This document shows, piece after piece, positions 12,651 to 58,401 of a DNA stretch of 64,000 nucleotides. Origin of the DNA: Setoptus koraiensis (lineage: Eukaryota; Animalia; Arthropoda). Below the pieces are notes generated by a model that saw nothing but the letters and a program-made list of their open reading frames with translations, made no database searches and had not been told where the DNA came from. Both the position numbers and the translations under genes were made by a program. Positions within the stretch are counted from its first letter, which is position 1. Each line of letters starts with the position of its first letter. The stretch is taken from NCBI GenBank assembly GCA_048013815.1, contig CM106586.1:10912001-10976000 (forward strand), read 5' to 3'.

Positions 12651-13323
12651 GATCAATATTTCCGGACTTGACTAGATCTTATTAAGGGCTCGATTTTCAG
12701 TGACTCTTAATTAATAATAACTCTGCTAATATCCTCTTGTTTATAATCTTTATAATAAGCATGTCTATACATCTCGTTTGATTTGCCTATGCCAAATATA
12801 CTTTAATTTCTGGACTAAAAAAAGCGTACTGATTAATAAATTAGCGAACTGTCGAAAATAGTGATAGTTGATAGGGGCGATGGCTCGAAAAGTGAAGTGG
12901 ATAATAAAAGTGTAGGTGAATCTGACTTGTGGGATTGCCGATTAGAACAATTTACATGCGACTGTTGCAGCAACTGCAGGGCAATTCAATAAATGCGCGC
13001 GTAACCCATGGCAACACATCAGCTGACTACGACATCTGGCAAGCTAATGTCATTTTTTGATTATCTTCTTTAAATTGTTTGTTTATGAAATGAATAAGAA
13101 ACGATTTCTCTACATTTTCCTGTACAGAAAAAAAGTAACACAGAGACGAAACCATTGCCTATGTAAATTGAGTATTGTCATTCCTTAATTTGCACACCGA
13201 CGAGAAATATCCTCTCACTTGTTTGAACGTGAGTCGTACTTTGTTATCTGTTTGTAGATTTATTTATTCAATATGGATGAAGAAGCAGCATTGATTTGTT
13301 AAGATCTTGTTAAGAATTTCGTC

Positions 13324-14052
13324 ATGATATTGTGTCTATCTTTGTTGGTAAATCATCTAACCATGAGTTCGAATCTGCTGCCAGTTAATAGTTTTGCTGG
13401 TCCAGCAACAATTGAACAGAACCATTCATCAACATTTATAACCACCATAAGCATAGGCTATCCAGGCTTTGCTTTGTCATTCTTTCTGAAAAAAATTATT
13501 CCACGGTCTAAGCAAACTATTTTTCTTGTGTTAACGCTCAACGAAGATATGCTAGAAACTGGCAAGCAACGATCGCTACAAATGTTGCCTCAATGCGATC
13601 TCGATCGTCTCGCCTGGACAGTGGGAGATGCTCAAGAGCTCCCGTTTGAAGACGAGTCTTTTCATCTTTACACAATAGCCTACGGAATCAGAAACGTAGT
13701 TGATATAGAAAAAGCTCTAAGAGAATCTCATAGAGTTCTCAAAAGTGGAGGTCTGTTTGCGTGCCTGGAATTCAGTCAAGTTACAAATCCAATATTGAAA
13801 GCACCTTATGAGAAATACCTTTTAGAAGTTATACCAGTCATGGGCGAAATAGTTGTTGGTGACTATAAGTCCTATAAGTATCTAGCAGAAAGCATATTGA
13901 ATTTTCCCAATCAGGAGGACTTCAAGCAGATGATAAAGGAGGCCGGCTTCACTTATGCTGGATACGAAAGTTTATTGCAAGGTGTCTCAGCTATCCATTA
14001 TGGTTACAAGCGCTTGTGCTCGATTCCAGTTGATAGAGAAAAAAAAAAATAA
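13324..14052 (+). CDS. Chimeric ORF, 242 aa: ~72 novel aa + COQ5 C-terminal ~158 aa + 12-aa read-through tail
   Basis: True ATG at 13324, in frame with the duplicated COQ5 segment. Lacks the SAM-binding motif I (DVAGGTGD). Expression unknown. Confidence 0.3.
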   Translation: MILCLSLLVNHLTMSSNLLPVNSFAGPATIEQNHSSTFITTISIGYPGFALSFFLKKIIPRSKQTIFLVLTLNEDMLETGKQRSLQMLPQCDLDRLAWTVGDAQELPFEDESFHLYTIAYGIRNVVDIEKALRESHRVLKSGGLFACLEFSQVTNPILKAPYEKYLLEVIPVMGEIVVGDYKSYKYLAESILNFPNQEDFKQMIKEAGFTYAGYESLLQGVSAIHYGYKRLCSIPVDREKKK

Positions 14053-14099
14053 ACTAATCTACTGGCTCAGTTGTTCTAAGTCATCTTCAGCATCTATAT
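13538..14099 (+). pseudogene. COQ5: Near-identical inverted duplicate of COQ5 3' part and TSR3 3' end (source 33361-33919)
   Basis: Line-by-line comparison shows 562 bp vs 559 bp. The differences are one substitution (stop TAG to TTG) and an A8 to A11 tract. Confidence 0.95.
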
Positions 14100-14366
14100 G
14101 GTTGTCAAAATATTTCTTTTTTCATGTTGTTTATTTGGCATCTAACAATTCTTTCGTGTTGAGGTTTAACAATTTTGCCGTTTCTTTATGGGTTGTTGCA
14201 TTCCGGAGGAACTCTTCTAGTTAAAGATTCACTTTTTTCTGGACAATATTTGTTTCTTTGTTTGCTAGAAGCTTATATAGACACACAGGTTGTTCAGCCT
14301 TCTACTATATTATATTGGAGGTGATAAAACGCCTAATACTAATGCTAAGTCTAGTCAGTTAATGAA

Positions 14367-16064
14367 CTAGCTTTTGAATGATGAATTTGCCTTTCTCCCC
14401 ATTGCTAATTGGTTCATTGTGGGCGCCACGCTTTTGGAATTTTGGGGCTTTAATAGATTATCAAGGTCGATGTTTATCTTTGCACCGATACCCAAACTAG
14501 CCCACGTCTCCGGGAGATTTCCTGACGCGCGCTTGCTCGAGTCCGAGGAGGCATCAGATATTTGACTTGTTGGCTGGATAGGTACAGGTATATCAGCTTC
14601 ACAATGTCCGTTATTGGTGGTTATGAGTCCGGAATGTGCTATAGGAGGTGAATTATTGCCTAGAATGTTATCCGAAAACAAGTCTATTTCGCATTTGTTA
14701 CTATTATTGCTGACATTATTTGTGGAGCTAACGAGATTGTTGTAGGTGGATTCAATCTCCACATTGCCTGCGATATCGTTGTTATCCAACAGATCAAAAA
14801 AATTATCACTACTCTGTTTTGGCGCAGATATCATGGAGCTCGATGGACTTTCTACGTTATTCAGCGTTTTTCCAGCAACAAAGATTGAGTTATCTTTTTC
14901 AAAAGAGATATCTCCAAATAAATCAGTTTCTATAATTGATTTATTCACTGTTGGTATAGAGTCCAAACCCTCTTTAACAGGTAGCACTTCTTCGGGTGGT
15001 GGTGGGGGATTGCTCATAGTCAAATCGGGCAAGTATGACTTGTTACTTTTGACCGGCCTGGGTTTTTTGTTAGAAAATATATCTATATTACTAACTATGG
15101 CTCTCAGATCAGGCTCACTGTCATTGGAAAAGGCGTTGGATGATGAAGCTTTATCGCTGATGCCCAAATTTAGATTGTCATCGAACTTTTTAGTCACATC
15201 ATCAATGATTTTGTTGTCGACAGATTGTCCTGATTGCTTCTTTGAACTTGAATCGCAGCTTTCCGTGCTTGTTCTTTTATCTCTGGAACCATTGTAATCC
15301 TCAGTATCGTTCGACAGTCCATAATCTTTAACATTGTCTGCGTATCTATTGCTACTACGATCAGAATAGATTGTTAGTCATTAGTGAGATATATGAAAAA
15401 TAGCAGTCAGAGTAGCGCACAGCGATGCTGAAATAACTCACCTGGACGTAGATCTTGAGAGGCCAGTAGTAAAAGTATCTGAGGCAACTCCGGTATACTT
15501 ATCACGATTTTTTTTAGCCTTTTTCCTCTCTTCGCGCAACAGATCATCATTTTGAACCAGTTCAATCATCTGTTTTACTCTTATTCTTATGTTGATCCCA
15601 CAATCTTTACCAGACTCATCGATGAAGGCGTAATTTTCCAGTGTCCTCAAATCAATAATGTGGTCCCTAGCGCTCGAAACAACTCTATCAGCACCATTCT
15701 TAATTAGGTAGTTGAGGACAATGAGCGCTTTGTAGGTTCTACGCCAGTTAAATTGATTGTCGACAAGCATTCTTCTCCAGAGCATGGCCATAATCTCTGG
15801 ATAATGTTCATATGAGAATGTTGCTTGGGCCAATTCCTGCATTAATTGACCTGTTGGACCCCATGCCTCATCGTTGGTGGCCTCGCGCACTTTGGCCTCC
15901 ACCTCGGTGTAGTTCATAACAATGTTAGTTCTGTGATGTGGCAACATAATGCGGATGCAGTTTAGGATGTTATTATTGGCATTAGGATAATTATGGAGTC
16001 GTGTATTTATGCGGCCGTGTTATATTACTTACGCTTTATCAACTATCTCTCTTAGTTTCCACAT
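14367..16064 (-). CDS. CLINT1: Clathrin interactor 1 / epsinR (lqfR); 3 exons (16064-16033, 15930-15442, 15354-14367), 502 aa
   Basis: MWKLREIVDKA|TNIVMNYTEVEAKVREATNDEAWGP ENTH domain, EERKKAKKNRDKY, C-terminal TW...NIDLDNLL. GT-AG junctions are in phase, with a GACTAAC branch point in intron 2. Confidence 0.9.
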
Positions 16065-17675
16065 GGTGATTGTTTGATCGCTACGTCCTACTAGAGCTTA
16101 TCAAGTTTTGTTTTTCATAAAAGAATATGAGCTTGTAAAACAGGCTTGTTAAAAATGACAAATGTATATGTATAATATTATATTATTTGATTTGATTTCT
16201 GTTGTTGGCTGGTTTTAATTTAATAATAATAAATAATTTCGCACCCAGTCATCTTCTCAACACCTGTAATCTATAATGGAATTTGGCGTGGTAGATGATG
16301 ATATTCCGATTAGTGACACAACACTATTAGTGACCATCTTTCAAGCTAATGATATGTGGTATAATAGATTAGTTTTAAATAAATAAGTCTATTTCTATAT
16401 TCCAAAAGACTCATGAGACTCAGACTGTCAGATGCGTGTATAAATGTATCGCAGGATGTTTTAATGAAATATATGTCTATTAGCGGGCGTCCATGTTTAA
16501 AATCAATACAACTTTATGATGTCACACAGTATTGTATACTTATTTTCTCTACTCTATTATGTTACATATACATGGTGATATAATAAATATAGAGACTACA
16601 CTGCAGTACAGTATAGCGGCGTATACGAGTGATATGAAGAAAAAAAATAAAAAATAAATTACGTAGTTTCATCTGATCGTTTTTGTCTGTGCAATTGATA
16701 AATGAGCGGCGTGTGCATTCTGTTTATCCGCTCAGATTGCACAAGCTGGATGTTCTAATTGGCCGGATGGTGGCGCCCCGAGCGCTTGTCTGTTGGCACT
16801 GTTGCCATGCGCCGCCACAGTAGACAAGCACAACAAAGTGTCACTTGTCACTGTCAAGTACAAAGTTCTTTGCAAACAACTGTACTTGTCAATCATACTA
16901 ATTAAGTCAGTCACAATCTGCATGACAGTACTTTTCAAGTTGCATCATTTCATATGTAATAAGTGCTGTTCGCTAGTTTAAACTAACAATTTGTTGTATT
17001 TGTAAGCAACGGCAGCCTCTAGAATGGCAAGTAATGTCAACACGCGCTTATCACGCCTAGTAGATGGTTACACGGACGCGAATGCTATAGCCATTTGACC
17101 TTGTCAAAACAAAGACCCCTATGGGGACCGACAGCACCGGAAGATCGGGTAGAGCGATTCAGAGTGTCTTGTGAGAGAATATATTGCCGCCTGATACGGA
17201 CCACAACCGCCCGCCGAGCTATCACTAACCATTAGTGACTAACGAGTGCGTTTGTTAGTGGATTGCTGTTCACAGATAACGGTGAAAATCGTGCCACTTT
17301 TTTCGGCGGCGTTATGTAAGACGCAATTCTAGATTTGTCAGAGCGCCTGTCGTGCGTTTGACATGAGCGCGCGGCCATGATTAACGGATCAACAAAGATC
17401 GAATTCGAAAAAAGAGACATCTGTCGGCTGTTGTCGCCAACTAGTTTCTGGCGCAATTCGATTGCCTAACCAATACCGTAAGTGTAGCAGCAAATAGAGT
17501 AAATACGTTACATAAGGCACACACACAGCCACTGTGCCACACAATTGAGTTATCTGACAAAGCGCCACTCGTCTTTGGCGATGTCTGTTTGCGTGCAATG
17601 GCGTACAAACAAAGATGTACGTTTCGAAGCGAGATTTTTGGCTAGCTCGCTCTAGTTGCCAGCTACGCTTTTGCT

Positions 17676-17701
17676 ATGATGATGATGATGATGATGATGA
17701 T
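17676..17701. repeat. (ATG)8 microsatellite
   Basis: Direct read. Confidence 0.9.
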
Positions 17702-18284
17702 TTATATGTGTAGCAGAGAAACATTGTAGACGCAGTGTGAAAATCTCAAGTGTTTTTGTTGTTGGACATCAACAACAAAACGCAACAAACAAACGAACGG
17801 CCATTGTTCCTGTGCAAACGCTTCTGTGCCGAATTTCGCACAATCATCATCGCACAATGAATTTGCCCCCTCGAAAAACAGATTTTGAAAACAAAAGCTG
17901 ATGAAAGCCAACTAATATAATGTCCCACCGCCTTTATTTCGTTCTACCCCAAAAAAGGTTGAGGTAATATTTTTCAAAGTTATTATTACATTAAATTGGT
18001 ACATATTGATTGACACAACTATTTTAAGACCCAGTCTTCATTTTTATTTTACCATAGTATAATCTCTTTCGCGTTTTAGAATAGACAATAGTAATTTGCA
18101 AATATTAATATATCATAGATAAATACGCAGATATAATAACATACACAAAAACATACATATAAATATATGTATAATCATAAATCTTATCTTGAATCTATAT
18201 CAATGATTTTATTAAAACAAAACCCTATAACTGACAATACAAAAATAAAGTACATTATCAGTTTGCTTAATAAACATTCGCAAA

Positions 18285-19081
18285 ATGAAGCTACTTGAGA
18301 GTAGTTGTTCCGAGTTGTTGAATTCAGCTTTAAATTTCGAAACTGGAAGATGTCGTATCATCGGAAGGTAAGATCCAATTGCTCCATTGCGAACCTTAAT
18401 AGTAGTCTCAAGTACTGAAAATTTATATTCTCAATAATTCATTCAAATGAACAATACAGAGTTGAAATATATTCATGCAAATTGGTTGCTAACGAAAAGA
18501 AACTTTTCAAACAGTTGAACGGTGACCCGAACAATGATCCAAACAAATTGGAGGCTTTGTCCCCACCAGAGAGCTGCTCATATTCTTGCAGTCCAAACAC
18601 CTATTATAGTAGAAGTCTTACTAGCGAAGAGGGTGACAAAGAGCACATATGTGACACTATCAGCCGAAAGACATTGTTCTACTTGATTGCTACACTGAAT
18701 GCATCATTCGGACCTGATTACGATTTCAGTAAAGCCAAAGCAGACGAATTCAGTAAGGAGCCTAACTACAATTGGGTCATGAACGCTATTGACGCCAATT
18801 TCCTTAGCTCACCAGCCCATCAATCATATTCTGTACTTAAACCACAATTGTGGTCGGCTATTGATAGCGCAATCAATATGCCAGAATGTGAGATATACAG
18901 TTACAACACCGATTTAAACTCTGACCCCTACTCAGAGGATGGTTGTCTATGGTCGTTCAACTATTTCTTTTATAACAAAAAATTAAAGCGGGTTCTGTTC
19001 TTCACATGCCGCTCTACAAGTAACTATGCAAGTGGCGATTCCTCTGGCGACAACGATATGATCGAAATGGACGACTTCTAA
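18285..19081 (+). CDS. MAF1: RNA polymerase III repressor MAF1; 2 exons (18285-18367, 18460-19081), 234 aa
   Basis: MKLLESS...IIGR|[54 protein letters not shown] phase-2 intron of 92 nt. Confidence 0.95.
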
Positions 19082-19340
19082 ATGATTTAAAATCAACAAA
19101 GATATAATCACTATCCTTGACACATGACAAACCAACTTATTAATAAATCTAAGTTTTATGACATTTGTAAAGACACTTCATGTTATCGTTTTCTTCTTTA
19201 ATCCGAATTTTCTACTATCGATGCTTACTGGACTGGTTATCTCAATGACTATCTTTACAACTAACTGGTCTGTAAATTCAATTTCTTTTCCAATGTAATC
19301 GTGCCAAGTATAACAAAGAATCAATAGTGTTGAATCCGGG

Positions 19341-21619
19341 CTAATCACCAACATCACCCGAACAACTCCCTTCTTCGCTTACGAGAGAACACTTTCTAGC
19401 TAGGGGTAAGGCATACGACATAAGATCCGGTTCCATCTTATTGGGACATGAGGTACTAGCTAATGTGTCATGATCACTAAATGCTTCGTGTTGCGAGATA
19501 TCAGTTGCTTCACTGATTTCGTTGTCTGTTCTAGAAGATCCCTCTTCGAGTTGATTCTCATTGTTCCAAGATTCAGAGGTACATGATAGTGGGGTACCAT
19601 GGAAGAATGGTGTAAATTTGTCTCTAAGTTTATGCTGAGGTTGCAGTATTCTTCTACGCATCTGTTGTTGCTGTTGTTTTGTTTTAAGAGTTGCCAAGCA
19701 ATTGATGGAAGTAGGAAGTTTTTCCGTTTTCGGAAGAGTATTGTTTGCAGAGCACTCCATTGTTACATCATCTGACTTTTCAACCTGTGTAGGCCTAGAT
19801 GATTCATTTATTGTATTGGGATTTTGGAAAGGTGTTGCCTTTTCAAAATCGTTTTGTTGATTTGTTTCAAATGCTTCGATATTTAGAGGATTGTGAGCGT
19901 CCATTTTTTGACTTTTTTTCATATTATGAGTATTACGAAGTGCTCGATCTCTCAATAACTGATATGTTGCGTTGATATATTCATCATAAGATACCTTTAT
20001 TGAGTCAGATTTAGAATGCAGCTCACTTTTGGCGGATGTAGCCTCAGTACCAGATTCGTCTTGCTTATCGTTAGAATGTTTATCATCCTTAGAAATTGAG
20101 GTATTATTAAATCGTCGATTGGTCAATCTGGCATTCTTAAGCGACTGCTCTATAGATGATTTTGAGTCACTAAGACAACTCAACGCCAACATTTCATTAA
20201 TGATCCGTTCATGTATGTTACGATCCTCTTCGCTCATCTCTCCCCCACTGATGTCAGGAGAGGTGGGTCGATAATATGTGTTGTTACTTCTTGGTGTATT
20301 TAGAGATCTCCCGAGGCTACTACAACTTCCGTTGGATAGCGGGGAGGAAGAGCCACCGAGTGTCTGCCTGTCTCCACTAGACAATGATCTCGATCTCATG
20401 TTAATAGGGAGACTTGTTGAATTAGTTTCATCTAAGTCATTCTTATCAAAAGAACAAATTTCGTCGATTGCTGGTAGACCAGCAGAGATTAATTGCTGCT
20501 TAGTGGCAGCACTAATAACTTTAGAGGGTTGGTGACCTGAGGCAGTTATCGCTGATAAAGACGATGAAAGTTTATGGCCAGTTGAAGGGGATTGTTTGAC
20601 TGACTGTTGTGGGAAGGCTTGATGATTTTGTGCATGCGAATGATGAATATTTAGGCTTGATTGAGTATTTTTAGGAGACAATTCTAACCAAGGATGCTGA
20701 AGTATCTCATACACAAGTAAACGAGAGTTGGGGTCACGTTTGATAAGTGATTTGACTAATTCTATAGCATGGCCGCTTATATCTGTTCTTTGGGGGATAG
20801 TGAAGGAGCAGTCTAGTATTTTCGTTAATGTTTCATTATCATTAATTTGCATGAATGGATTCCCACCAAATAAAAGGATGTACAACATGATACCCAATCC
20901 CCAAATATCAACTTTTGTGCCATCATAAATTTCCCCTAACAGTAATTCTGGTGCAGAGTATGCTAGAGTTCCACACGAAGTGCGCATCTTTTCGTCGGGA
21001 TTCCATTGGTTGGCGAATCCAAAATCTATTAGCTTTATCAATGGACCAGATATATTATTATTAATCGAATGCTTGTGATCGGTAACAAGGATGTTCTCTG
21101 GCTTTAGATCTCTATGCACAATCTTTAGCGAATGACAATAGGCTATGGCACTGCATATTTGTTTGAATATATGCTGGGCTTCTGTTTCGGGTAATCCGTT
21201 CCTCTTGTTTCTATTGAAAAGATAGTCATGAAGATCGCAAGCATGCGGACCGCAATACTCCGTGATCAAATGTAGTTTAGTTTTGGTGTCAATAACCTGA
21301 TATAGTTTCAATATGTTGGGATGCTCGTACTCGGATAGTCTAAATAATATTCTTATCTCTGTCCCTAATTGGCATAGACTCTCTTTGTTGAGTCTGGCTT
21401 TTTCAATGATCTTTATTGCGACCGGTTCACCTGAATAGTGGACAACGAGGAAGAGAGAATTTGCATACTTTAAAATCAGATAATATTCAGGTCATCAGTA
21501 CAAATGATAAATGGTGGTTGTCACAACTAACCTGTTAGGCAATGCCTCGCTAATTTGACTAGTCCATAGTGTCCCTTGCCCAATGTTTTAGACGTTATGT
21601 CGTAGAAACCCTTGGCCAT
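19341..21619 (-). CDS. SNRK: SNF-related Ser/Thr kinase; 2 exons (21619-21532, 21430-19341), 725 aa
   Basis: LGKGHYGLVKLARHCLTG|EPVAIK, HRDLKPEN, DFG, TSCGTLAYSAPE, split UBA (NATYQLL), RKCSLVSEE. The 3' end may have an extra exon. Confidence 0.85.
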
Positions 21620-22739
21620 TTAATAATCTGATGTTAATTGTTGTGAGTTCAGATGGCCAATATAGGGATAATTGTTAGGTCTAATGTTATATTTATTCCT
21701 AAAGACAAATTTTGTATCATTTTGATTTATCGCAAAATTTTGTTATAGTTGTGTATATGGCTGTGTCTCTTGTAGCGTTATATACCTATGCCATGGTTTA
21801 TAATGTATTTTGTCATTGAATATTACTATTACATACGTATCACTTAATATACATTAGCATGTGTCTTTCTCAATGACAGATTGCTTCTTATGTGAACGTA
21901 ATTGATGGTATCCATCCAACCGAGAAAACGTATGTAAAAATGTAAATGTCAAATCTTACAAATCAATTGTTGTGAAGTGTGTAGTCGTGTGTGCTGGTAA
22001 GACCAAATGTAACAATCACTTAAGTAGAATCTGAAGATTATTACTTTCAATTTATTTTATATAATAATAGTCAGACTAGGTCGTGATCATAGGTAGTTCA
22101 TGGACAGAGACCATCCAGGTAAAGGCAGTTGGAGAAAAAACCTGTTCAATAAGACGATAAATGTTGCAGGGACCTAATGATAATAATAATATGCAGTAAT
22201 ATGCTAGAATCGTCGTTTTTGATGACTACTCTGTGTTGATTTTGCGACACAGCCACATACCTGTAAAGAGCTGTGTGAGGCATTTCGAGGGCATAAAGTG
22301 GGCGTTTATGGATGACGCATTGTACTTGTGCGGGTATTTTAATTTTTCGATAAAACCACGTCAGGATTTTATATTTTTCTCCCGATGTTGTTTATTTAAG
22401 ACGATTTTCCAGCAAAGATATGCTGGTGGAACTATAGGCTCCGAAAAGTAGATAGCGTGAAGACGTGTATCGGACGGAAAATAATGGGAACGCTCAAACA
22501 CGCCCAATCTGGCACTACCTAGTCTGTGATGCGCTGTTTGTGAAAATTAACAAAAAAGAAAACATTTTCGGGTTAGGCAAAACGCATGCAGAAAGAAAAA
22601 GATAGATGTAGATATATCCATGAGTCCGTGAATTCGGTAATTAGTTAGTCGGTTGTAACAATCTACTTTTTCACCGGTATACTGCATATAATCATGAAGT
22701 TTAATGTAAAATTACTTGGTTACTTGATTTTAGGTGGAT

Positions 22740-23300
22740 CAGATTGCCAAAAGAAGCAGAGTAGAGGCGCGGATTTTTAGATAGTAGGGAATTTACGATT
22801 GTAGATCTTTATTGACATTGCAATCAACTAATTATGGCCAATGAGATTGGGCATATATTATTTGTTTGCTAAACCAATATTTCTCTAACTCATCCTCTAG
22901 AGATGAGCTAAACTAATTTATTCACCCTCCGATGAGTACTAGTCTAGCATGAGTAAAAAACGGTCACTCTATAGTGTACATAGACATATGAATGGAGGCT
23001 ACAAAAGAGGAAACTAAGTCTTCTCTAAAACGTTTCCGTCTTTTTTATTCAATAAAACTTAAATGACCGAATTGCTTAAACAATTGTGGTCAACCAAAAG
23101 AAATTGACTACTTGACAATTTAATAGGTTACCCCGCAAAGCTTGAAGCCATCAATCATATTCAACTCAAACAAAACCGACAATGCATCAAACATCAGTTT
23201 TATTGGCCATAATGTTGTGTATGGCAACTGTGTCAGGCCAAAGTTATCACACTCTTCTTATACCAAGCCAAATCAATCATAGACATTACATAGACGTTCA
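22740..23300 (+). mobile_element. Possible highly degenerate LTR-retrotransposon integrase relic
   Basis: Stop-riddled peptides IKHQFYWP*CCVWQLCQAK and DCQKK...IFIDIA loosely resemble Gypsy integrase Zn-finger and core motifs. Weak. Confidence 0.15.
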
Positions 23301-24575
23301 CTAAAAAAAAATAGTAATAATAATAATAATAATAGTAAAAATAATGAGCACCATGTCGAGCGTCTGATGCAATCAATTTGAAAGGTCCAGAGGGGTCACT
23401 CCGAAAAGTATAGATAAACTCCGATATGCCGACAACATGCCCATCGATCCTGATGAGCAACCATCCGCTTGTTTGACTATTAGTCAAAATACCATTGATC
23501 TGAGGAAATTATGAAAAGTTAGGTTGTGTTAGTTGAAATGTCAATGAAAGCAATAGACATCATGAAGAGACATTCTAGTATTCGTATATCTCAGCTGAAG
23601 AAATTTTAGAACTCAACATGTTGAATGGAATGATTATTCAGTTGTCCCTATCTAAAAAGTTGTCATCATTTTAGACGAATACAGAATTCTCCAGATCTGA
23701 ATGTTGTGTGGAAGATGGATACTTACAGTGGAACTCGACATGTAAAATATTTCTTATTCATCGTCTGTCTAGATTGGGCAACACACTACAAGGTGGAACT
23801 ACTAGTAAGTCGAGTGGATAGATGAAAGCTGTATGATTAGAATTAGGCCGAGTAATCGACGGGACGCGTGTAACGTAACGCAAAATCAGTGAACTAAGTC
23901 GTAATCATTAAGATCAGAGATCTTGGTGAATTCTCATCATTTTATGGGTTTCGAAGATGGCTGGTCCCAGCTAGGCATGGTGCGCATACATACCCCATAG
24001 ATATAACTTCCAAATTGACTGGCTCTTCACAACCTAGATGAAAAGAGGCGAAAGAGAAGACGAATGTTACTATAATGCATCCTGGGGTGATAAAGCTAGC
24101 GAGTCGAGCCAGCTAAGGATAATTGTTCGCTACGTTTGATGGCACGGGTGACAGTAGTTGAGATTTGCATCTGGATGCCCCCGCTTCCTATGTAGTAATG
24201 CTCGTTCAATATTGTCTCTAACAATAACAATTTGTTTTTAAATTGGCACCGCAGTCAACCAATGGTCAGGCTACTCGGCGTGGCGTTGAGACGGAACCAG
24301 ACGTGGACTTTTTGATGAAGAATGTATATTGGACTTACCTCCATACCGAATCGATGATGAGGCCAGTGTGGCCTAATTGGTGGCCCGTCAATAACTGGAG
24401 CTAAACATTAGAGAATGAGCCCTTTATATAGCCACCGGGATGGCTGTTGTCACGATAGTGTTGCCATGTGTGTTTGTTCATGTCCGGAAAATGAGTGAGA
24501 CTAGCATGCTGTTTTCGTGTTGGCGGATTGTACATGCCAATGGAATGTTTTCTGACCGCAGCGAAACACGCATTG

Positions 24576-24598
24576 CACACACACACACACACACACAC
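24576..24598. repeat. (CA)11 microsatellite
   Basis: Direct read. Confidence 0.9.
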
Positions 24599-25202
24599 CG
24601 ACATGGTGACACCGGCATATTAAAATTAAAGCTGCAAAGTTGTGTCAATCAATCCTAATATGATGGCTATAGAATACTCTCAAAAGATTATTTGTCCCCC
24701 ACATACGACAGCATTCAAAACAATTGTTCACCATTGGTAATTTCAACGGCATGCCTCTCCACCGGTTGGTTTGCCTTTGCTAGGAAATTGATACAAGCCG
24801 ATAACGAGACGCTATTGACGACGCATTGGAACCCTTAGCAACATCCTACACCAATTAAACCCGTTACCCGAAAAGTTGTTTCGTGATTCATGCGGGCAGC
24901 CTCAATCGATTTTAACGCATCAAGTTGACTTGCATCGATTTCCGTCGTGTAATGTGCTAGGTTAGTCCTGGCCACTAAATTCATCCAGCCGAATGAATTT
25001 GGTGTTGCAGTTGTTTTATTTGTGGTAGTTGTTGCATTTGGTATTGTTTTCATCGCAAAAAACAGTGTGAGCAGAAAAAATGGGCGTCTACCGTATATTT
25101 TCGTGTTTAATCACTCGTTTGTCGTTAGCAATTTTTATTATCGTCACGATGATATCGTGTCAGTCTAGTTTTGTCGTTGCTGGTTGAAACATGATCATGC
25201 CA

Positions 25203-25247
25203 TTTTTTTTTTTTTTTTTTTTTTGAGATAAAAGGAGACTTTTTATT
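25203..25247 (-). terminator. AATAAA signal followed 17 nt later by genomic A22 (IMMP2L 3' end)
   Basis: Plus-strand TTTATT at 25242-25247 and T22 at 25203-25224, ~110-155 nt downstream of the IMMP2L stop. Confidence 0.7.
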
Positions 25248-25357
25248 GAGACCTGCGCAAATTCGGCCACAAGACGGCGTAGCACGGCAGGTATATATTG
25301 ATGGCGCGGGTATGCCCGGGATATGCGAGATGGATAGGGTATTATTGGCTTGGGCGT

Positions 25358-26104
25358 TCAGCCGCGCTTTTGCGGCTTGCCGATTGGCTCGTCCGGGGGA
25401 TCGTCTCGATAGGGGCTGACTGGAGTTGTTTTGAGTGACTTGAAGGGCGCCATAGGGTCGCGTTTCACGGGACCAATCCTGTCGGGCGGCCACACCACAT
25501 AGGAGGCGCGTGCTGTTATGAGACCAAGCGGAACCTGTCCGAAGAGACTCGAGTCTTCGCGCTGGACGCTCAATGGCAGTTGATTGTCGCTTTCGACCCA
25601 ACAGTGACCGGCATCGATGGTGACGGTCCTGGCCTCCTGGACGAGATGTACGGTGTCGCCGGGCAACGCGATCACTCTTTTGATAAGACGGGCCTCGGGC
25701 CTCCTGGGTGAGATTAGTATAACGACATCTCCGATGTTTATCTTGGATTTATCTTTTATTGACCACCTGTTGAATAATACCCGATCGTGTCTAAATTGAA
25801 TGTTGCGTTTACGTTCATTGCCCATCAGATGTGGCAGGCTTTCTGGCAACCACGATGACATGGCAAAAGTTTTCTTCAAGCTTGATAGAAGGTTTGAGCG
25901 TTCGTTCGTTTTCTCAATTTCGCTGGCAGGCGGGGGTGTTTGATGGATCCATATGTCTGGCAGATGTTTATTGAAGGTGGGTTGCATTGACGTGCCAACG
26001 ATTTCGCCAACAAATCCGATCTCATTGAGAAAGTTGATTGTTGCGCTCGAGGCCAGCGCAATAGCCAATACAAGATCTTTGTTTGAATTGGCCCATTGCT
26101 TCAT
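25358..26104 (-). CDS. IMMP2L: Mitochondrial inner membrane peptidase subunit 2 (S26); intronless, 248 aa
   Basis: Catalytic Ser box GTSMQPTFN, Lys box LIKRVIALPGD, GHCWVE, DSSLFGQVPLGL, VWPP. Confidence 0.88.
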   Translation of the reverse strand: MKQWANSNKDLVLAIALASSATINFLNEIGFVGEIVGTSMQPTFNKHLPDIWIHQTPPPASEIEKTNERSNLLSSLKKTFAMSSWLPESLPHLMGNERKRNIQFRHDRVLFNRWSIKDKSKINIGDVVILISPRRPEARLIKRVIALPGDTVHLVQEARTVTIDAGHCWVESDNQLPLSVQREDSSLFGQVPLGLITARASYVVWPPDRIGPVKRDPMAPFKSLKTTPVSPYRDDPPDEPIGKPQKRG

Positions 26105-26727
26105 CTCGGCCCATGGTCTGCCTTTCTGAACCTAGATAGTTTTGTATTACTGTAGGCCGATAATATCGTCGATCCGTTTAATGAGTGATTTAAGTGTTGA
26201 TGATAATTAATAATTGTCACCGTTCTGCAATGACCATGTGACAACGATAATAAGCAACAAAACAATGAAAACAAAAAAAAAAGCACATTCGCTCACATAG
26301 ACGGATGGACGCGAGGTGGCGCCGTAACTACTGGCAGCCAATAGGTGGTGTGCACTGCGCAGCAGTGATGCGGGCAGGGTCGAGCTCCTTGGGCATGCCC
26401 ACGATGCCGATTTTCTGGAATAAATTCTTGGTAAATATGTGAAATACTGTCGGTTTTCATGGTTTTAGTTTAAGAAATCAATTAGTTCTTCGTCATCAAT
26501 GTCTCATCTAACTTTAATCATCTAATTAGTTCGTGATTGTCTTTATCCCGTCTTAGTTCAATTGAGCTCAATGTCCGCCCCACTCAATGGGCATGTCCAA
26601 CCGCTCATAGTCGGGTGATTCGTTTAAACACTTCCAGGTGACACCTCGCGGCCATGTTAGGATATATCAAATGTCGATGCTTGCTAGAAAAATATAAACA
26701 GCGTTAACTGATGGGTCTCTTCCCCGC

Positions 26728-27474
26728 ATGACCATTTCACCCAAGATGTCATCGTCATCAGCAGAGGAGTATACTGTTGAGAAGATCATCAAGAAACGTT
26801 ATAATTCTAGGAAGAAATATAACGAATATCTTCTGAAATGGGTTGGTTATGGACATGAAGATAACACATGGGAGCCCGAGCACAATCTCGATTGTCCGAA
26901 ACTATTCGAAGAGTTCAAAAAGCAAGAAGAGCTCGAGAGGCAAGAAGAGCTCAAGAGGCAAGAAGAGCTCAAGAGGCAAGAAGAGCCCAAGAAAAAAGGG
27001 TCAACATCGAGCAAAACCAGCACACCAACATTGCCACGTATTGTTGTGCCTTTTGGCGACAACAAAACTAGCAGCAACAACAACAACAACATCAACAACA
27101 ATGACGATTCACACTTACCCCAAGCCCCGGTCAGTATTCTTAAGCCGGCTACATTATCTGCCTCTGTCGACAACATCAACGCGCCAAATACATGCGGTGG
27201 CGATAGCGTCAACGCTAGCGCACTTCGAGTCGACAGTGAGGAAGATGATGAAGATTCAGTAGAAAAAATTCTTTCTGAACTGGACAGTAATCACAAACCC
27301 GATAAGATAATCGGCGCTACCCGAAACTTAGATAATATTTCCTTCTTGGTGAAATGGAAGGACACTAGTGAGGCCGATCTCATAAGTCATAGGGTCGCTA
27401 GAATAGCATGCCCGCAAACAGTCATTGAGTTCTACGAAAATAATATCCGCTGGAATGATTCGGAATATGAGTAA
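26728..27474 (+). CDS. HP1: HP1-family protein (chromo + chromoshadow domain); intronless, start 26728 or 26746
   Basis: Chromodomain EYTVEKII...[24 protein letters not shown] and chromoshadow PDKIIGAT...FLVKWK...[15 protein letters not shown]. Confidence 0.92.
26923..26994 (+). repeat. 4 x 18-bp coding tandem repeat in the HP1 hinge ([24 protein letters not shown])
   Basis: CAAGAAGAGCTC(G/A)AGAGG units. Confidence 0.9.
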
Positions 27475-27657
27475 TGAGATTCTCATTTGATGTTATCTAT
27501 AAATGTTAAAGTGCGTTAGAATACATTAAAATTAAGTGTCGCCTGCCTGGAGATTTCGTCGTCATGTGAATTTTCAGCAGAATATAGCTTTATTAATACC
27601 GTTGATTTGATTTTCTAACGGGTTAGTCATTAAATTTTGCACTGGGTTGTCTAGATT

Positions 27658-28084
27658 TAGTGATGGGGGGAGATCTCCCGCCACGGGAGAAATTTCTCCC
27701 GCCCAGGGAGAATTCTCCCGGGAGATTTTCTCCCTGGGAGCCTCCCGGGCTCTCCCGCTCCCGCGGATCTCCCGAGTCTCCCAAATGTCCCGTTTTTGAA
27801 AAATTTATCGAAACACTCTTTGCTTGGCTGAGCATTTTCTGGCGCTCGAGGCGCTCCTGGCGGAGAAGAAAGCAAGCTTCCATAGTCAAAAACGCACACG
27901 GGAGGTTTGGGAGAAATTCGGGAGGTTTGGGAAGAATTTGGGAGATTCGGGAGAGGATTGGGACATTCGGGAGACTCGGGAGATCCGCGGGAGCGGGAGA
28001 GCCCGGGAGGCTCCCATGGGTGAATCTCCCGGGGAGCGGGAGATGTTCTCCCATGGGCGGGAGATCGATCTCCCCCCATCACTA
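27658..28084. mobile_element. hAT-type MITE, 427 bp, 8-bp TSD TCTAGATT
   Basis: Termini TAGTGATGGG...CCCATCACTA, long imperfect TIRs packed with GGGAG/CTCCC motifs, identical 8-mers at 27650-27657 and 28085-28092. Confidence 0.92.
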
Positions 28085-28361
28085 TCTAGATTGAATCTTT
28101 TGAATCTCGCGGTTGTGGGTAAAAAACACGTGTCAATGGGTTAGATAATCAATTAGGTAATTATCGATACAGTGAAACTGGCTGAACGGCCACAAATTTC
28201 AATTCAGTGGATGGCGCACTCTTTGAACATCAAAAAGAAAGACCCTATTGGAATAAACTATGCACTTTGAACTTTATTCACCGTTCATGTAGACCCCCAA
28301 TGACATAGAGTTGTCAAACAAATTACAAACTTTGTTAAATATCTCACAATATCATCAATGA

Positions 28362-28902
28362 CAAGGGGTTGTCTCATTTTGGGGTATTTTTATTTTTGGT
28401 CTTCGATTCTTGAAAATAGGGTATGGTTGGAAAGATCTCTCTCCGGTGGAGCCAGAAATCTGGTTTATTTCTGTTTCTGGTTTTTCGTTCACCAGACACG
28501 CCCAACTTTGAGGCCTCTTTTCAACCCGAGAGAGCTGAGATACAAGGCTAATTTCGGCTCTAAACGACGTCTTTTTCAGTGAACTATAAGGTGAAATAAA
28601 AAAATAGTGAGAAAAGTCGCGCAGTCTTGGTTAAAATTACGAAAAACCTAGAATACCGGGGTCAAGATTTTCTCAAAAATGTGCCTTATATTGTGAAAAT
28701 TGCATGTCGTTCTACGAGACTTTTCACAAAATAGTGCGCTTATGCGTTAATTTATAAAAATTACGCGCGCTGAGATGGAGCTTTTCATTAAATAGTGCGA
28801 TCGCTGAAGATGTGGATGGATAGAGAGATCTTTCCAACCATACCCTATTTTCAAGAATCGAAGACCAAAAATGAAAACACCCCGAAATGAGACAACCCCT
28901 TG
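28362..28902. mobile_element. Second MITE, 541 bp, ~80-bp TIRs (CAAGGGGTTGTCTCA...)
   Basis: Inverted match 28362-28445 vs ~28822-28902. It interrupts the transposase relic. No TSD evident. Confidence 0.8.
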
Positions 28903-29267
28903 GGCCATCATCGGCTTGTTTGTAGCCCGCTTTATGCCAACAATTTTGGGCTCATGTAACACTTACTTTTGACCAGGCTTGTTCAATCCAAACTGTAGCA
29001 TTGTATAAGTTGAAACTCTTTTCAACTCCTTTCAAACATTTTTTTTTCACTATAGAAATTGTATATGTGTCTCATCAATAGTGCAACATAGTGTACTTTG
29101 AATGTTTTAATTACACCCTGATCGAGGGCTTGTACTTTTGTAGTTGTCCTGGGTGGCGAAAATTTAAAGTGAATACGTGGGTATAAGTTGAAATCAATTT
29201 TGTGACCCTCAAAATTGTCACACACTAGAACGATGTGGTCCTGGTAACTGTATCGATAACTTGTCAA
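28903..29267 (-). pseudogene. pogo/Tigger DDE_1 transposase relic
   Basis: IVLVCDNFEGH...FSPPRTTTKVQALDQGVIKTFKVHY, then after a frameshift FNLYNATVWIEQAWSKVSVT*AQNCWHKAG. This matches the family pattern LLLDN..H / LPPNTTS.LQP.DQG.I..FK..Y / AW..V....I.NCW.KAG. Confidence 0.88.
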
Positions 29268-31561
29268 TCTCTAGGATCAAATATTGTATCCGTACAATTG
29301 ACCCAGATGTGGTGCGCCGTACTTTCGGCTCTTGTAAAAAGAGGGTCCGATTGTGCTCAAGGCAAAGTCCCCTTGCAGCAATCCATTGATTGATTATCAA
29401 AACAGTTCTCATTTGAACCTATTCGCGAAAAATTTATAATTCAACTTGATCTCTCGCAAAAGATATGATTGAAACAACCCAGTGCAAAATTTAATGACTA
29501 ACCCGTTATGAGGTTGACTATTTGTCCACAAGATGAATCCTCAACTGTTCTAGAGTCCCTACAAGATAGATGGGTGACATGTGAAACTTGTTGGCGCAAT
29601 TTTCTATGGAAATTGATGAATAAAATTGATTCTATTCAATCTCTGGCTCATCATGATTTTTTCCTCAACGCAGCCGTCGACGTCAAGACTCAAGCTCTAT
29701 TCCTTGGTCGAATTTTCGATCCACCTCCCATATTCACCAGGCTGGTGAAAGGTCACCCCCGGGTTAAGCAATCCATCCCATCTTCTTGATTTCTATAATA
29801 GCATCGTGTGTGGATCGAACGTTTGCTCCGAGGAAATCTTTATCCACTAGTTATTAACTGTTAGGATGACTCCACCGTAAGAGTTTCCCCTTCGTGGTAG
29901 GAGCTCTCTGCTCGGCATTACGACAACCTTCCAGATGTAAATTTTGGCGGAAAGTTACACGAAGTCCAGACTTCCACTACTCTCTGCCAGAGAGTATACC
30001 AGACTTGCCGTTTCTGGCTTCACGATTCCGGGGAAACGAAATAACAGTTGAAAGCGATTCAAACTATAAAGTATTTACCGGAACTTTATTCGCAAAACAA
30101 TAATGTCGCCACAATTCGATCGTTTAAAGCTCGAAATTCGCGCCTTCTAACAGAGTCAACAGCTGGCCTTAGACTCCTACGACATTCGCAGAAACAAGAG
30201 AAACTGCGATGCATCTGCTATCCTTACGCTGATGTGTCACATATTTCAGGTTTTTTGTTGTTATTACTATTATTATTATTTTATTATTATTATCATTTCT
30301 ACTACTACTACACAGTTATTAGTTGATCAAATTCTCATCAATTTCTTCGCTAATTCATCACTATTATATCACATCTCTATCTCTCCCAATCGCGATTCCA
30401 TTCATTGGACTTGAGTCATATTAATTAAGCATGCATAGGTGAGAGTATCAAATATATGGACACGACAAGACGAAAAGGTTTACTGCAACGTTCTGGTTAA
30501 ATGGCCAGCAAGGAATAACATACTTATTGTTCTAGGACATTTCTAATATCGTAATTATCAGAGTCAAGAGAAACATGAACTCCAGTCACCGCTGATCGCA
30601 CATCTGTTACTTAGCACACAAGATTCAGAAACATAGTCCAACAAGCGATCAATACATCTTATCATGAGTCATCAAAACTATTAGTTTCACGCTATCATAT
30701 TGTAAGAATATAAGCATGCTAAAATGTTCATAATATAGACTTAAACATTGAGCTTAATCTCCGATCCTCTGATAGCTTAAAATAGCTGGTCCAAATTACT
30801 GAGCACAAGGCCAGAGACTCCAACTAAAAATATCCACGATAACTCGCGGCTTTAGATACAAGCTGAGCAAATCAAAAACAACATCAACAATATTTTTGCT
30901 TTTGGAAAGTCTCTACGATCAAAGGATTTTCGAGAAAAACAAGAAGAAGAAAAGCCTCAACTACATCATCCCGATATATTCTGCACAACGGTAAATCCAC
31001 CAATCTATTCTTCATACATCTATATCAAAAACAGCAACTAGACGTTGCTTTTCTTCAGGACTAGCCAACATTCTATTGGTCATAAACGTTATTTTAGTTA
31101 TACGTGATAGATGCTAATTAGAAAACTATCATAATCAAATATAAGAAACAGAAATAATAAAAGCAACAGACAAGATCCATCGCGATTAGTTCAGTTTTGC
31201 AGGCGCCACCCAGTAGAAGTACATTAGTATAGTCGGCAGTATAACAGCAAGTTGACTCGCATTCATCAGCATTCATAAATGATGAATTTTCCATAAGCAT
31301 CCATCCAAGTCTTCCACCACCTGCACATAGAAAAATAATATTATTTGTTGCGTCATCATTTAAAACATTGGAGTTGATAATATAGTATTCAATAGCAATA
31401 ACATACAAACTTATAGTAACTTCTTTGAACAACAAATATAAAAGACCGCCCCATTTTATATAAAGCAAGTTCCGAACAAAGCAGGTTCGTCAGGATTGGA
31501 ATATAACACCACACCACAATTAGATTATCTCAATCAAATCTATTACAAACAAGATATAAGG

Positions 31562-31936
31562 ATGGCCGAAGGAGACGGTTTCGGTGGTGAAAATGTGTGC
31601 AACATTGTAGCATCTTTTGTCAATCAACGCGAAAGCATGCAAAGGTTACTAGCTTTCCTCAGCTCCTCCCAAGAGATTTGCTCTGATACCAACTGCATAG
31701 ATGAATTCTCAGACTTGTCGAGCCAGACTGGCGGACCATTGTCCGCTGGCCCATCGGATGCTATAACGGACTCTTTCGCTTTCGTTCTATTTTTAGTTCT
31801 TGCTATTTTAACATTATTATTCATGGGCATGGGTAGAAATGCTCCCTTACAAGAGGGTAAGCGTAACAATGACCGCCGAGGCCCCGAAGACAATAGTGAT
31901 AGACGCAATGATGACAATCAACAGAGACTATTATGA
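31562..31936 (+). CDS. SMIM14: Small integral membrane protein 14 (DUF2615); intronless, 124 aa
   Basis: MAEGDGF...C...MQRLLAFLSSSQEICSDTNC followed by one TM helix. Confidence 0.8.
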   Translation: MAEGDGFGGENVCNIVASFVNQRESMQRLLAFLSSSQEICSDTNCIDEFSDLSSQTGGPLSAGPSDAITDSFAFVLFLVLAILTLLFMGMGRNAPLQEGKRNNDRRGPEDNSDRRNDDNQQRLL

Positions 31937-32527
31937 AATTTCAATTGATTTAAATCAGTATCAATATAAAATAATATGTCGCTGTAATAAATTATCTGGA
32001 ATGAAACAACCCTAACACGACGAGAACCCACAACAAGTGTACATTCCAAATGCGCTTGTTAGGAGGATACACCCACATGAACATTTCTAATAATAATATC
32101 AAGATTTCTATAGTCACTATCAGTTAAGATTGGCTTGGAGTGTGGAAAGTTCCAAGATTGAAAACACTATGCCAGTAGATAAAGGCCTATAATTATTCAA
32201 CAAACATTAATTCTCATTACTTTCGCTTTTTGCCATTCATTCGTGGTTTCGCTTGCACGCTTATCCTTCATGAAAGTCTCTTGATGTTGAATAGAAATGA
32301 GAGAAACTACTCTCTGGGAGGAATATCTCACCCGATCACTAACTAAAGATTGGCGTTCAAACTTTGCGCGTAATACCAGAGCATGATTTCTGGCAAGCTG
32401 ACAACGGCTTTGTAAGAATGGTGGCGTACATTTAATTGAAAATCTTGTTTACTTTTTCTCCAAAATAGTGCAGGCGTCTGATTCAACAAATCACTGCTAT
32501 TATCCACTCTATAAGACATCTCCAAAT

Positions 32528-33401
32528 ATGCCCCGTGCCAGGAGGCCGCCCAAGAATGGTCATGCATTCAAAAGAATGATGAAAACATCGCTGACTTTGG
32601 GTGAAACAGAAGATTATGAATCATCGTTAGCAAAATCTTTCGAAAACGAATTGAACGTTTCCAGTTCGACTGATGAAGAGGACAACGAACCCGAAATAAC
32701 TATGAGAATTGCCATGTGGGACGTTGGCCAATGCGACCCAAAAAAATGTACCGGTCGCAAACTCGCCAGACACGGGCTCATCGAATCTCTCAGATTAGGA
32801 ACTAGATTTAACGGTATAATTTTATCGCCAATGGCCACTAAATGTGTTTCGCCAGATGATGTCGAAATAATCAGCGAACACGGTATAGCTGTGATAGACT
32901 GCTCGTGGGCAAAGATAAACGAGACACCTTTCAACAAAATGCGTGGCAAACATCTCAGATTATTACCCTATCTCGTGGCAAGTAATCCTGTCAATTATGG
33001 AAAACCGTGTCAATTGAGCTGTGTTGAAGCTGTTGCTGCTACTTTGAGACTGTCTGGTTTCAAAGAGGAATGCGATTTTTACCTAAACAAATTCAAATGG
33101 GGACCAACATTCATCACACTTAATCAGTGAGTTTATGACATTACTAAATAGATTGGCGATGCTCTCGATATCCCATCAACCATAATTAATTAATTTCTTT
33201 ACTTTGTTCTTTTTAACCCTTACTGAACCCATGTTAATTAATCAAACTTCTTTTAGGGAACTTTTTGACTCCTATGAGCAGTGTAAAAACGGAGATGATA
33301 TTATTGCCGCACAAAACAAATACATAGATGATTGTAAGAATGAAATTGAGACAAGTCATAATATAGATGCTGAAGATGACTTAGAACAACTGAGCCAGTA
33401 G
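32528..33401 (+). CDS. TSR3: 18S rRNA aminocarboxypropyltransferase; 2 exons (32528-33126, 33257-33401), 247 aa
   Basis: [62 protein letters not shown]|ELF. GT-AG intron of 130 nt. Confidence 0.95.
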
Positions 33402-33440
33402 ATTAGTTTATTTTTTTTCTCTATCAACTGGAATCGAGCA

Positions 33441-34292
33441 CTAGCGCTTGTAACCATAATGGATAGCTGAGACACCTTGCAATAAACTTTCGTATCCAGC
33501 ATAAGTGAAGCCGGCCTCCTTTATCATCTGCTTGAAGTCCTCCTGATTGGGAAAATTCAATATGCTTTCTGCTAGATACTTATAGGACTTATAGTCACCA
33601 ACAACTATTTCGCCCATGACTGGTATAACTTCTAAAAGGTATTTCTCATAAGGTGCTTTCAATATTGGATTTGTAACTTGACTGAATTCCAGGCACGCAA
33701 ACAGACCTCCACTTTTGAGAACTCTATGAGATTCTCTTAGAGCTTTTTCTATATCAACTACGTTTCTGATTCCGTAGGCTATTGTGTAAAGATGAAAAGA
33801 CTCGTCTTCAAACGGGAGCTCTTGAGCATCTCCCACTGTCCAGGCGAGACGATCGAGATCGCATTGAGGCAACATTTGTAGCGATCGTTGCTTGCCAGTT
33901 TCTAGCATATCTTCGTTGATATCCACGATGGTTGCCTCTGATATAAGATCATTGTTTTCACGTGTTTTCTCTAGAAATTTAAATGCGATATCCCCCGTGC
34001 CTCCGGCTACGTCTATCATTTTAGTGCCTTTGATTGGATCGATCTTGTCAATCAGATATTGTTTCCAACATCTGTGTAGGTAACCACTCATTAGGTCATT
34101 CATGAGGTCATATTTGGAGGCCACATTTGAGAATACTCCCTTGACAAAATTCTCCTTTTCCTCTGGGGGTGGCAACGAATGGTTCAGGTATCTCACCAGA
34201 TGATTTTGGCGAGCAGTGTGAGGCCGAATGAGTTGGGTGCCTGTCTGGCACAATAGATGTCTTGCTCTGGACAACACTCTAGGTAAGGCCAT
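33441..34292 (-). CDS. COQ5: Ubiquinone biosynthesis C-methyltransferase COQ5; intronless, 283 aa
   Basis: VFSNVASKYDLMNDLMS, motif I IDVAGGTGD, GDAQELPF, YGIRNV, SYKYLAESI. ATG at 34292 begins a presequence-like N-terminus. Confidence 0.96.
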   Translation of the reverse strand: MALPRVLSRARHLLCQTGTQLIRPHTARQNHLVRYLNHSLPPPEEKENFVKGVFSNVASKYDLMNDLMSGYLHRCWKQYLIDKIDPIKGTKMIDVAGGTGDIAFKFLEKTRENNDLISEATIVDINEDMLETGKQRSLQMLPQCDLDRLAWTVGDAQELPFEDESFHLYTIAYGIRNVVDIEKALRESHRVLKSGGLFACLEFSQVTNPILKAPYEKYLLEVIPVMGEIVVGDYKSYKYLAESILNFPNQEDFKQMIKEAGFTYAGYESLLQGVSAIHYGYKR

Positions 34293-40610: not shown

Positions 40611-41451
40611 AATGCAGCAAAATTTCAGCAATAATTGCGAGTTTCGACATGGATAGACTGATCCAACTTTGGTGAGGCAAACAAAAGTGATGCTCCATCG
40701 CGACGCTCACGCCGTTCAGTTGCGGATCTCTATGATGTAATATAGAGAGGATATTCTCCTATTTTGTATCTCAATTCAATGCCGTCTCTTTGTTTAAATT
40801 ACTGCGCTATTCCTCCATCAATATAACGCACTATGCGTGTCGTAAATCGTGAGAAATGTTAGATCTAACAAGTAGTTTGGCATTAATGTAAACACAGCAA
40901 AATGTTTGGTAACAAGTGCAAGTTTCGACATGAACAGAAGGATTCGGCTTTGGCAGGCCAACAAAAAAGGGTACTGCCTCGCGACACTCGTGCCACTCGG
41001 TTGCATCTAACGGTGTGATATATGGATGATTTTCTCCCATTTTGTTTCTCGTTCCAATGCTGTCTCTTTGATGAAATTAGTGCGCTATGCCTCGATCATT
41101 ATAGCACCCTTTGCATGTCGTAAATCATGAGAAATCGAATTGATTCAATACTTGAATTTCAAGGGGTCTGGTATGATTGTAAACACAGCAAAATTCTGAT
41201 AACAAGTGCGAGCTTCGACATGGATAGACTGATCCGACTTTGGTAAGGCAATCAAAAAAGATGCTCCTTTGTGACGCTCGCGCCACTCAGTTGCGGATCT
41301 CAATGATGTGAAATATGGAGGATATTTTCCTATTTTGTATCTCAATTCAATGCCGTCTCTTTGTGAAAACTACTGCGCTACTCTTCGATCAATATAGCTC
41401 ACTTTGTGTGTCTTAAATCGCGACAAATTAAATTTGTTTGATCTAACAAGT
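40611..41451 (+). repeat. Three diverged tandem units (periods 280 and 291 bp), possibly decayed WD40 repeats
   Basis: Units start at 40611, 40891 and 41182. They share TTCGACATG, CTTTGG, CAATGC(C/T)GTCTCTTTG and TGCGCTA, and translate to L(I/V)TSASFD..RIRLW..N...C..TL. Confidence 0.75.

Positions 41452-58297: not shown

Positions 58298-58401
<104 letters not shown>

Follow-up and report, generated by a model that had tools for sequence, protein, structure and literature searches.

The window, by which we mean the whole 64-kb stretch of DNA analysed here, contains zero N and is 41% G+C. It carries COQ5 and TSR3, two genes that run toward each other, and a second, inverted version of the place where they meet. 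The features of the source locus are as follows:

33127-33256, plus strand: TSR3 intron, GTGAGT...TTTTAG, 130 nt
33257-33401, plus strand: last exon of TSR3, after the intron; its last 13 codons plus stop (33360-33401) fall within the source arm and run antisense to the COQ5 3' UTR
33361-33919, minus strand: source arm, with COQ5 coding sequence at one border and TSR3 coding sequence at the other
33441-34292, minus strand: COQ5, the source gene, intact and intronless, 283 amino acids plus stop

The COQ5 product matched Pfam PF01209 (Ubie_methyltran) at 2.7e-81 over profile positions 5 to 233 of 233, and it matched the yeast Coq5 structure 4OBW at 1.6e-64. Its closest public relatives are 67% identical and include that of the eriophyoid mite Fragariocoptes setiger. 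Eriophyoid genomes are among the smallest of any animal and have undergone extreme streamlining and intron loss (PMC7738191). Because intron loss is typical of eriophyoids, the intronless state of COQ5 is no sign of retroposition. The TSR3 exons were searched separately, and the Pfam family Ribo_biogen_C was divided between them: profile positions 1 to 104 of 127 are in exon 1, and positions 105 to 127 correspond exactly to the first 23 residues of exon 2. Codon usage was scored as log-odds, using a measure trained on 6,609 codons from confident genes of the same window. The last TSR3 exon scored +0.35 and +0.51, and the 13 codons inside the arm, which have an acidic tail, scored +0.51.

COQ5 (minus strand) and TSR3 (plus strand) are convergent, with their stop codons 39 nt apart. 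The AATAAA of COQ5 (33412, minus) and that of TSR3 (33481, plus) each lie inside the transcript of the other gene. Therefore, the two mRNAs must overlap tail to tail. It is this tail-to-tail overlap of two convergent genes that makes up the copied block, which is found again at the following place, together with the features around it:

13324-14052, plus strand: chimeric ORF, 242 codons plus stop
13324-13537, plus strand: recruited 5' part of the ORF, 71 codons plus the first base of codon 72; looks non-coding
13538-14099, plus strand: inverted partial duplicate, with COQ5 codons 126-283, the former stop, the 39-nt intergenic spacer, and the TSR3 end in antisense
14015, plus strand: the single substitution, T in the copy versus A in the source (33442, read on the minus strand), by which TAG becomes TTG
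14039-14049, plus strand: A run, A11 in the copy versus A8 in the source, running into AATAAA at 14048-14053
14367-16019, minus strand: epsin-like (ENTH) gene, the neighbor of the copy, with its stop at 14367-14369 and AATAAA at 14135-14130

Local alignment and a repeat search of the 64-kb window agreed that 13538-14099 (plus strand, 562 nt) is the reverse complement of 33361-33919. The two arms are identical at 558 of 559 aligned bases and differ by one additional 3-nt indel (99.8% identity). Positions 13538-14038 correspond to the reverse complement of 33919-33419, with the sole mismatch at 14015, and positions 14042-14099 correspond to that of 33418-33361, with zero mismatches. The copy takes in the rear 56% of the COQ5 gene, and a spacer of 19.4 kb separates the inverted arms. 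Identity breaks off abruptly at both ends of the copy, where the flanks are 26 to 27% identical in register (z of ~0 against other offsets). A 562-nt match at 99.8% is not attributable to chance. The initial annotation of this DNA had described the inverted copy with its TAG-to-TTG and A8-to-A11 changes, and this description is exact in all details. It had also called the change in the A run frame neutral, and the 3-nt difference does preserve the frame of the ORF. The inclusion of the TSR3 end within the copied block is a new finding that goes beyond that annotation.

The list of ORFs contained the 242-amino-acid frame that had been reported, with an in-frame upstream ATG, new 5' residues, and an added tail. 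It consists of 71 nonhomologous codons, a hybrid Leu72 codon, COQ5 residues 126 to 283, and the tail LCSIPVDREKKK. It closes with a new stop, TAA at 14050-14052, which falls within the AATAAA at 14048. Exact-product lookups in public assemblies, done for both COQ5 and the chimeric ORF, returned no record. A metagenome scan with a 26-mer from the arm returned 0 matches, and neither an Rfam scan nor a tRNA scan of the window gave a match.

In class I methyltransferases, strand beta-1 is the central strand and bears the S-adenosylmethionine (SAM) loop. The COQ5 part of the copy opens at Asn126, right after strand beta-2. Alignment shows that residues 1 to 125 are absent, and with them the presequence, the N-terminal helices, motif I, beta-1, and beta-2. 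Motif I (DVAGGTGD) is at source residues 94 to 101 and the acidic end of beta-2 (VDI) is at residues 123 to 125, both upstream of N126. The missing region aligns to positions 11 to 99 of the crystallized yeast Coq5 chain, including the glycine-rich SAM loop. Pfam coverage agrees: the Ubie_methyltran match in the chimeric ORF spans residues 66 to 229 but only profile positions 74 to 233 of 233. Therefore, the claim that the copy lacks the presequence and SAM motif I was upheld. Because the mitochondrial presequence is missing along with motif I and strand beta-2, any product is predicted to be catalytically dead, as the initial annotation had expected. The copy has none of the marks of a functional UbiE/COQ5 class I methyltransferase that we looked for (motif I, VDI, and a presequence). 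Any product should be inactive, and it is unlikely to fold as its parent does.

We also examined the part of the ORF that was recruited from the recipient site. Its 71 codons had a codon-usage log-odds of -0.016. All of the 189 coding windows of 71 codons that served as a reference scored at least -0.014 (median, +0.21), so that the recruited part falls below every one of them. The recruited residues had zero Pfam matches even at an E value of 10, a low Atlas recognition value (1700), and Atlas matches with scores of 0.82 at most. They had no similarity to COQ5 or to anything elsewhere in the 64-kb window. An exhaustive phmmer search of 1.84 billion representatives returned one match (E value, 1.2e-4), to a protein of 4,144 amino acids with 33 Calx-beta repeats. 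We judged this match to be spurious because its score adds up six repeats.

The N terminus of the ORF is hydrophobic, and its first basic residue is at position 56. By its composition, it is unlike a presequence that targets proteins to the matrix. The site of COQ5 action is the matrix face of the inner membrane, inside the CoQ-synthome (PMC4331671). An N terminus that is not presequence-like, taken together with the site of COQ5 action in the matrix, makes a dominant-negative action unlikely. AlphaFold2, run with a 30-sequence alignment, returned pLDDT values of 29 to 67 for residues 1 to 60 and of at least 84 for the COQ5 part. In the recruited part, it drew a look-alike of beta1-alphaA-beta2 at a pLDDT of 52 to 67. 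This look-alike stems from the alignment columns given to the predictor. We also considered an older full-length copy with a recently gene-converted 3' part. This was rejected, because DNA identity in the flank is 26% in register, with a z of ~0, and the BLOSUM comparison gave a P value of 0.10.

When the insert was removed in silico (13303-13537 joined to 14100-14224), the empty site had an open frame of 119 codons, with 112 amino acids from the ATG at 13324. The continuity of this frame assumes 0 bp of microhomology at the left junction. The frame is hydrophobic. Its halves, which were also searched separately, have no coding signal (-0.016 and -0.117), and 1 to 2% of composition-matched shuffles equal it. 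It may have arisen by chance, or it may be a lineage-specific small ORF that was split by the insert. The proposal that the insert split a real small gene was rejected, on the grounds that neither half has a coding signal, that shuffles match the frame at the frequency just given, and that it needs the 0-bp microhomology.

The loss of the stop codon and the long in-phase frame are both unusual. A random single substitution would remove the stop with a probability of 0.42%. Among noncoding positions or shuffles, 0.4 to 1.2% have an upstream open frame in phase that is at least 78 codons long, and an ATG-initiated in-phase extension of at least 71 codons occurs at 0.14 to 0.33%. Both coincidences lengthen the ORF, and at face value their joint chance is about 1e-5. 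Genome-wide multiple testing does not fully absorb this figure unless the post hoc choice of "striking" features is counted too. COQ5 orthologues terminate 0 to 3 residues past the same GYK[RK] motif. Therefore, the stop of the source is the ancestral state and the TTG of the copy is the derived one. Locally, the plus strand is rich in T and poor in stops, and the stop loss extends the ORF by 12 codons only. Given the post hoc selection, the stop-poor strand, and a gain of 12 codons without evident benefit, we kept chance as the main reading. The substitution in the stop codon is most likely a chance event, with no apparent selective reason or benefit.

The recipient site is a 1.9-kb spacer between an ORF and the epsin-like gene, and the insert starts ~30 nt past the epsin AATAAA. 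The edges of the insert show neither a target-site duplication nor a terminal inverted repeat, and the flanks contain no direct repeat. No A run follows 14099 and no T run precedes 13538. Microhomology at the junctions is 2 bp (TC) at most. The flanks are unique within the window and have no terminal inverted repeats, unlike what is expected of transposon capture of the Pack-MULE or Helitron type. At the donor, a 7-bp stem (AAGTCAT/ATGACTT) with a 16-nt loop, at 33355-33385 (minus strand), spans the 3' breakpoint, and the copied tract ends in the loop. None of the hairpins at the four breakpoints was significant, and the 7-bp donor stem had a z of -0.7 against shuffles. The absence of a target-site duplication, terminal repeat, or poly(A) tail, together with microhomology of no more than 2 bp, speaks against transposon capture as well as against a retrocopy. 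On either side, the source arm runs on into intact coding sequence. Therefore, both junctions at the source are ancestral and both at the copy are new, which favors copy-and-paste over an inversion with staggered breaks.

We consider it likely that this is a recent copy-and-paste partial duplicate that is nonfunctional and has recruited an ORF by chance. The 562-bp overlap of the COQ5 and TSR3 tails would have been copied at the DNA level and pasted in inverted orientation 19.4 kb away, into intergenic DNA ~30 nt beyond the poly(A) signal of the epsin-like gene. The joining step would have been end joining or template switching, and both source genes would have been left intact. The copy would be a nonfunctional gene fragment. 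The 242-codon ORF would have arisen because the insert fell in phase with an open frame that was T-rich and poor in stops and that by chance held an ATG. The TAG-to-TTG and A8-to-A11 changes would then be neutral mutations in an unconstrained copy. The copy is presumed not to be expressed.

Other origins for the two arms were weighed against this. Drosophila inversions that arise by staggered breaks leave inverted duplications at their breakpoints (Ranz et al. 2007; PMC1885836). By analogy, the arms could be the footprint of a 19.4-kb micro-inversion, with fill-in of a staggered break around the 3' part of COQ5 and a flip of the segment between the arms. The inverted arms flank one segment exactly, as that model predicts; one duplicated block would suffice if the second break was blunt, and COQ5 and TSR3 would both remain usable. 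However, the model calls for one ancestral and one new junction per arm, and the source arm is continuous on both sides. This test rests on the TSR3 splice model and the coding signal of TSR3. The last TSR3 exon spans 33360/33361, and its in-arm codons are coding-like (+0.51), so that under an inversion the acidic and well-coded TSR3 tail would need to be an accidental product of the strand antisense to the COQ5 3' UTR. Two further inverted fragments in the window, described below, have sources that are internal to ORFs. We regard the inversion as unlikely. An artefact of assembly or polishing, in which either the insert would be false or both the T at 14015 and the longer A run would be, is very improbable. 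The length of a homopolymer is a classic consensus error, but the substitution at 14015 is outside any homopolymer, and unique sequence on both sides of the insert means that two false joins 562 bp apart would be required. The copies also differ from each other and therefore were not collapsed or cloned by the assembler, which speaks against a simple assembly duplication. Least probable of all is a retrocopy with a truncated 5' end, made either from the COQ5 mRNA or from a read-through transcript of TSR3. The copy is 5' truncated and ends 46 nt past the COQ5 AATAAA, and because its source is intronless, the absence of introns is uninformative. However, that end is beyond the usual cleavage window of 10 to 30 nt, and a poly(A) tail is lacking at both ends, as is a target-site duplication.

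Two more readings give the copy a role. In one, it is a nascent chimeric gene, expressed as a dead-enzyme scaffold, as a dominant-negative partner of COQ5, or in a new role, with the stop loss having been selected. The joint improbability of the long in-phase ORF and the stop loss speaks for this, as does the retention of the plus-strand AATAAA at 14048. Also in its favor, COQ5 dimerizes and joins a multiprotein complex (PMC4331671). However, the recruited part has neither a coding signature nor relatives, the AlphaFold confidence for residues 1 to 60 is 29 to 67, and what remains of COQ5 would be a Rossmann-like fold minus its central strand, beta-1, and minus strand beta-2. Furthermore, an N terminus unlike a presequence gives no obvious route to the matrix. 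A nascent gene is thus improbable. The initial annotation had interpreted the locus as a young inverted partial copy within a chimeric ORF, and as a nascent gene or dominant-negative fragment. The first part of this stands. The second found no support, given the log-odds of -0.016, the lack of relatives, and the lack of a presequence. In the other reading, the copy is a regulatory by-product. Read-through from the epsin-like gene would yield COQ5 RNA in antisense that stops at the TSR3-derived AATAAA, now at 13976 (minus strand), and that could pair with the COQ5 mRNA and feed RNA interference, or else the insert could act as a two-way terminator that aids 3'-end formation. The insert is placed suitably, ~30 nt past the epsin AATAAA, with poly(A) signals on both strands (14048 on plus and 13976 on minus), and an older COQ5 piece is also antisense, ~390 nt beyond the stop codon of an ABC-transporter gene. 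However, this case is built on position, and the older piece is decaying (83.5% identity and a frameshift), as neutral DNA would. We think a regulatory role quite improbable.

The window contains two other inverted gene fragments:

43949-44106, plus strand: older inverted COQ5 fragment, codons ~33 to 84; its source, 34042-34197, is inside the intact coding sequence
47573-47648: inverted fragment of 76 nt, 87% identical to 49924-50000; its source is inside an ORF at 49106-50041 (minus strand, no Pfam family)

The older COQ5 fragment is 83.5% identical to its source and has a 2-nt indel. The gene that it lies ~390 nt beyond is the ABC-transporter gene at 44493-47018 (minus strand). COQ5 has thus given rise to at least two inverted copies of its parts within 20 kb. 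The 76-nt fragment is 2.3 kb from its source and is the third local inverted copy of a gene fragment in the window. Because the sources of both further fragments are internal to ORFs, only copy-and-paste is possible for them, and they are not footprints of inversions. Therefore, the copying and pasting of gene pieces recurs in this 64 kb.

Several repeats of other kinds were seen in the same window. At 40599-41451 there are units of ~280 nt in two to three direct repeats with 73 to 84% identity and no large ORF, which Tandem Repeats Finder did not report. Short inverted repeats occupy 27616-29508 (27650-27791 and 27960-28090, 80%; 28362-28442 and 28822-28902, 96%; 27616-27650 and 29474-29508, 100%), just downstream of the gene at 26698-27471, which is HP1-like and encodes chromo and chromo-shadow domains. 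A possible identity for these repeats is small foldback or MITE-like elements. Dense periodic repeats of 9 nt and 3 nt, rich in CAA/GTT and GTC/GCC, fill 58200-64000 on both strands (families D1 to D3), and these are probably low-complexity coding repeats.

We also compared the surroundings of COQ5 with those in three relatives, using their COQ5 contigs from Logan (62 to 67% identity). None of them has a COQ5 neighbor in common with the window. In two of the relatives, the genes run in the order dynein light chain, mitofilin, COQ5, unknown gene, Bax inhibitor, and Cwc15. In the third, ANAPC4, MCRS1, and ELP1 adjoin COQ5. With no COQ5 neighbors in common, gene order around COQ5 turns over fast in these mites.

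The copy is an ordinary, very young partial duplicate, and it is unlikely to have a function. By itself the locus matters little, beyond showing cleanly what a newborn partial duplicate looks like before decay sets in. It is young enough to be polymorphic, and it might serve as a marker to date or trace populations. Taken together with the older COQ5 piece and the fragment at 47.6 kb, it points to local copying of inverted fragments across the genome, which would be notable in a genome otherwise known for DNA loss. The arms themselves could have consequences. At 562 bp and 99.8% identity, they could drive ectopic recombination that flips 14100-33360 and creates a small inversion polymorphism. 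Because each arm carries both gene tails, such a flip would leave COQ5 and TSR3 intact. Gene conversion could carry the stop-less TTG into the working COQ5, and read-through of the epsin-like gene would give antisense COQ5 RNA. The most far-reaching proposal is that the genome scatters short inverted copies of gene pieces within ~20 kb and that some are kept for where they land, by antisense tuning of COQ5 or as a two-way terminator, with arms that could allow a harmless 19.4-kb flip. We see this as a long shot.

Some features of the copy recall known systems. Templated insertions arise by template switching (FoSTeS/MMBIR) or by the capture of fragments at breaks during end joining. As in these, a short nearby segment has been used, often an inverted one in such events, with microhomology of 0 to 2 bp and no target-site duplication. 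However, 562 bp is long for the filler DNA left by polymerase theta. In mouse oocytes and in Drosophila, pseudogenes are sources of antisense RNA and endo-siRNA. The copy resembles these sources in being an inverted gene fragment placed where a neighbor's transcription could read it in antisense, and here the likeness is one of position only. The source gene is a full member of the UbiE/COQ5 family, which includes yeast Coq5 (4OBW/4OBX) and human COQ5 (PMC4331671). Residues 126 to 283 of that member recur unchanged in the copy, but the copy is without the glycine-rich SAM loop, strand beta-2, and the presequence. The inversion duplications described by Ranz et al. also have nonrepetitive inverted arms that flank one segment, and an arm may hold part of a gene. 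Unlike in that model, both ends of the source arm here continue into intact coding sequence, and the spacer is only 19.4 kb.

The closest likeness is to partial duplicates with recruited flanks, a large class among the young duplicates of Caenorhabditis elegans and Drosophila (reviewed by Katju 2012; PMC3449122). Our case differs from that class in that the block takes in the 3' ends of two genes that converge and overlap, and in that the recruited part is 5' and is without promoter evidence. As in that class, the copy is part of an intact parent, its ORF enters a nonhomologous flank, and the duplication is DNA mediated, local, and very young. The copy covers residues 126 to 283 of a full-length parent and its ORF runs into DNA that is not homologous to that parent. 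Therefore, it belongs to a kind that is already known, partial duplication with recruitment.
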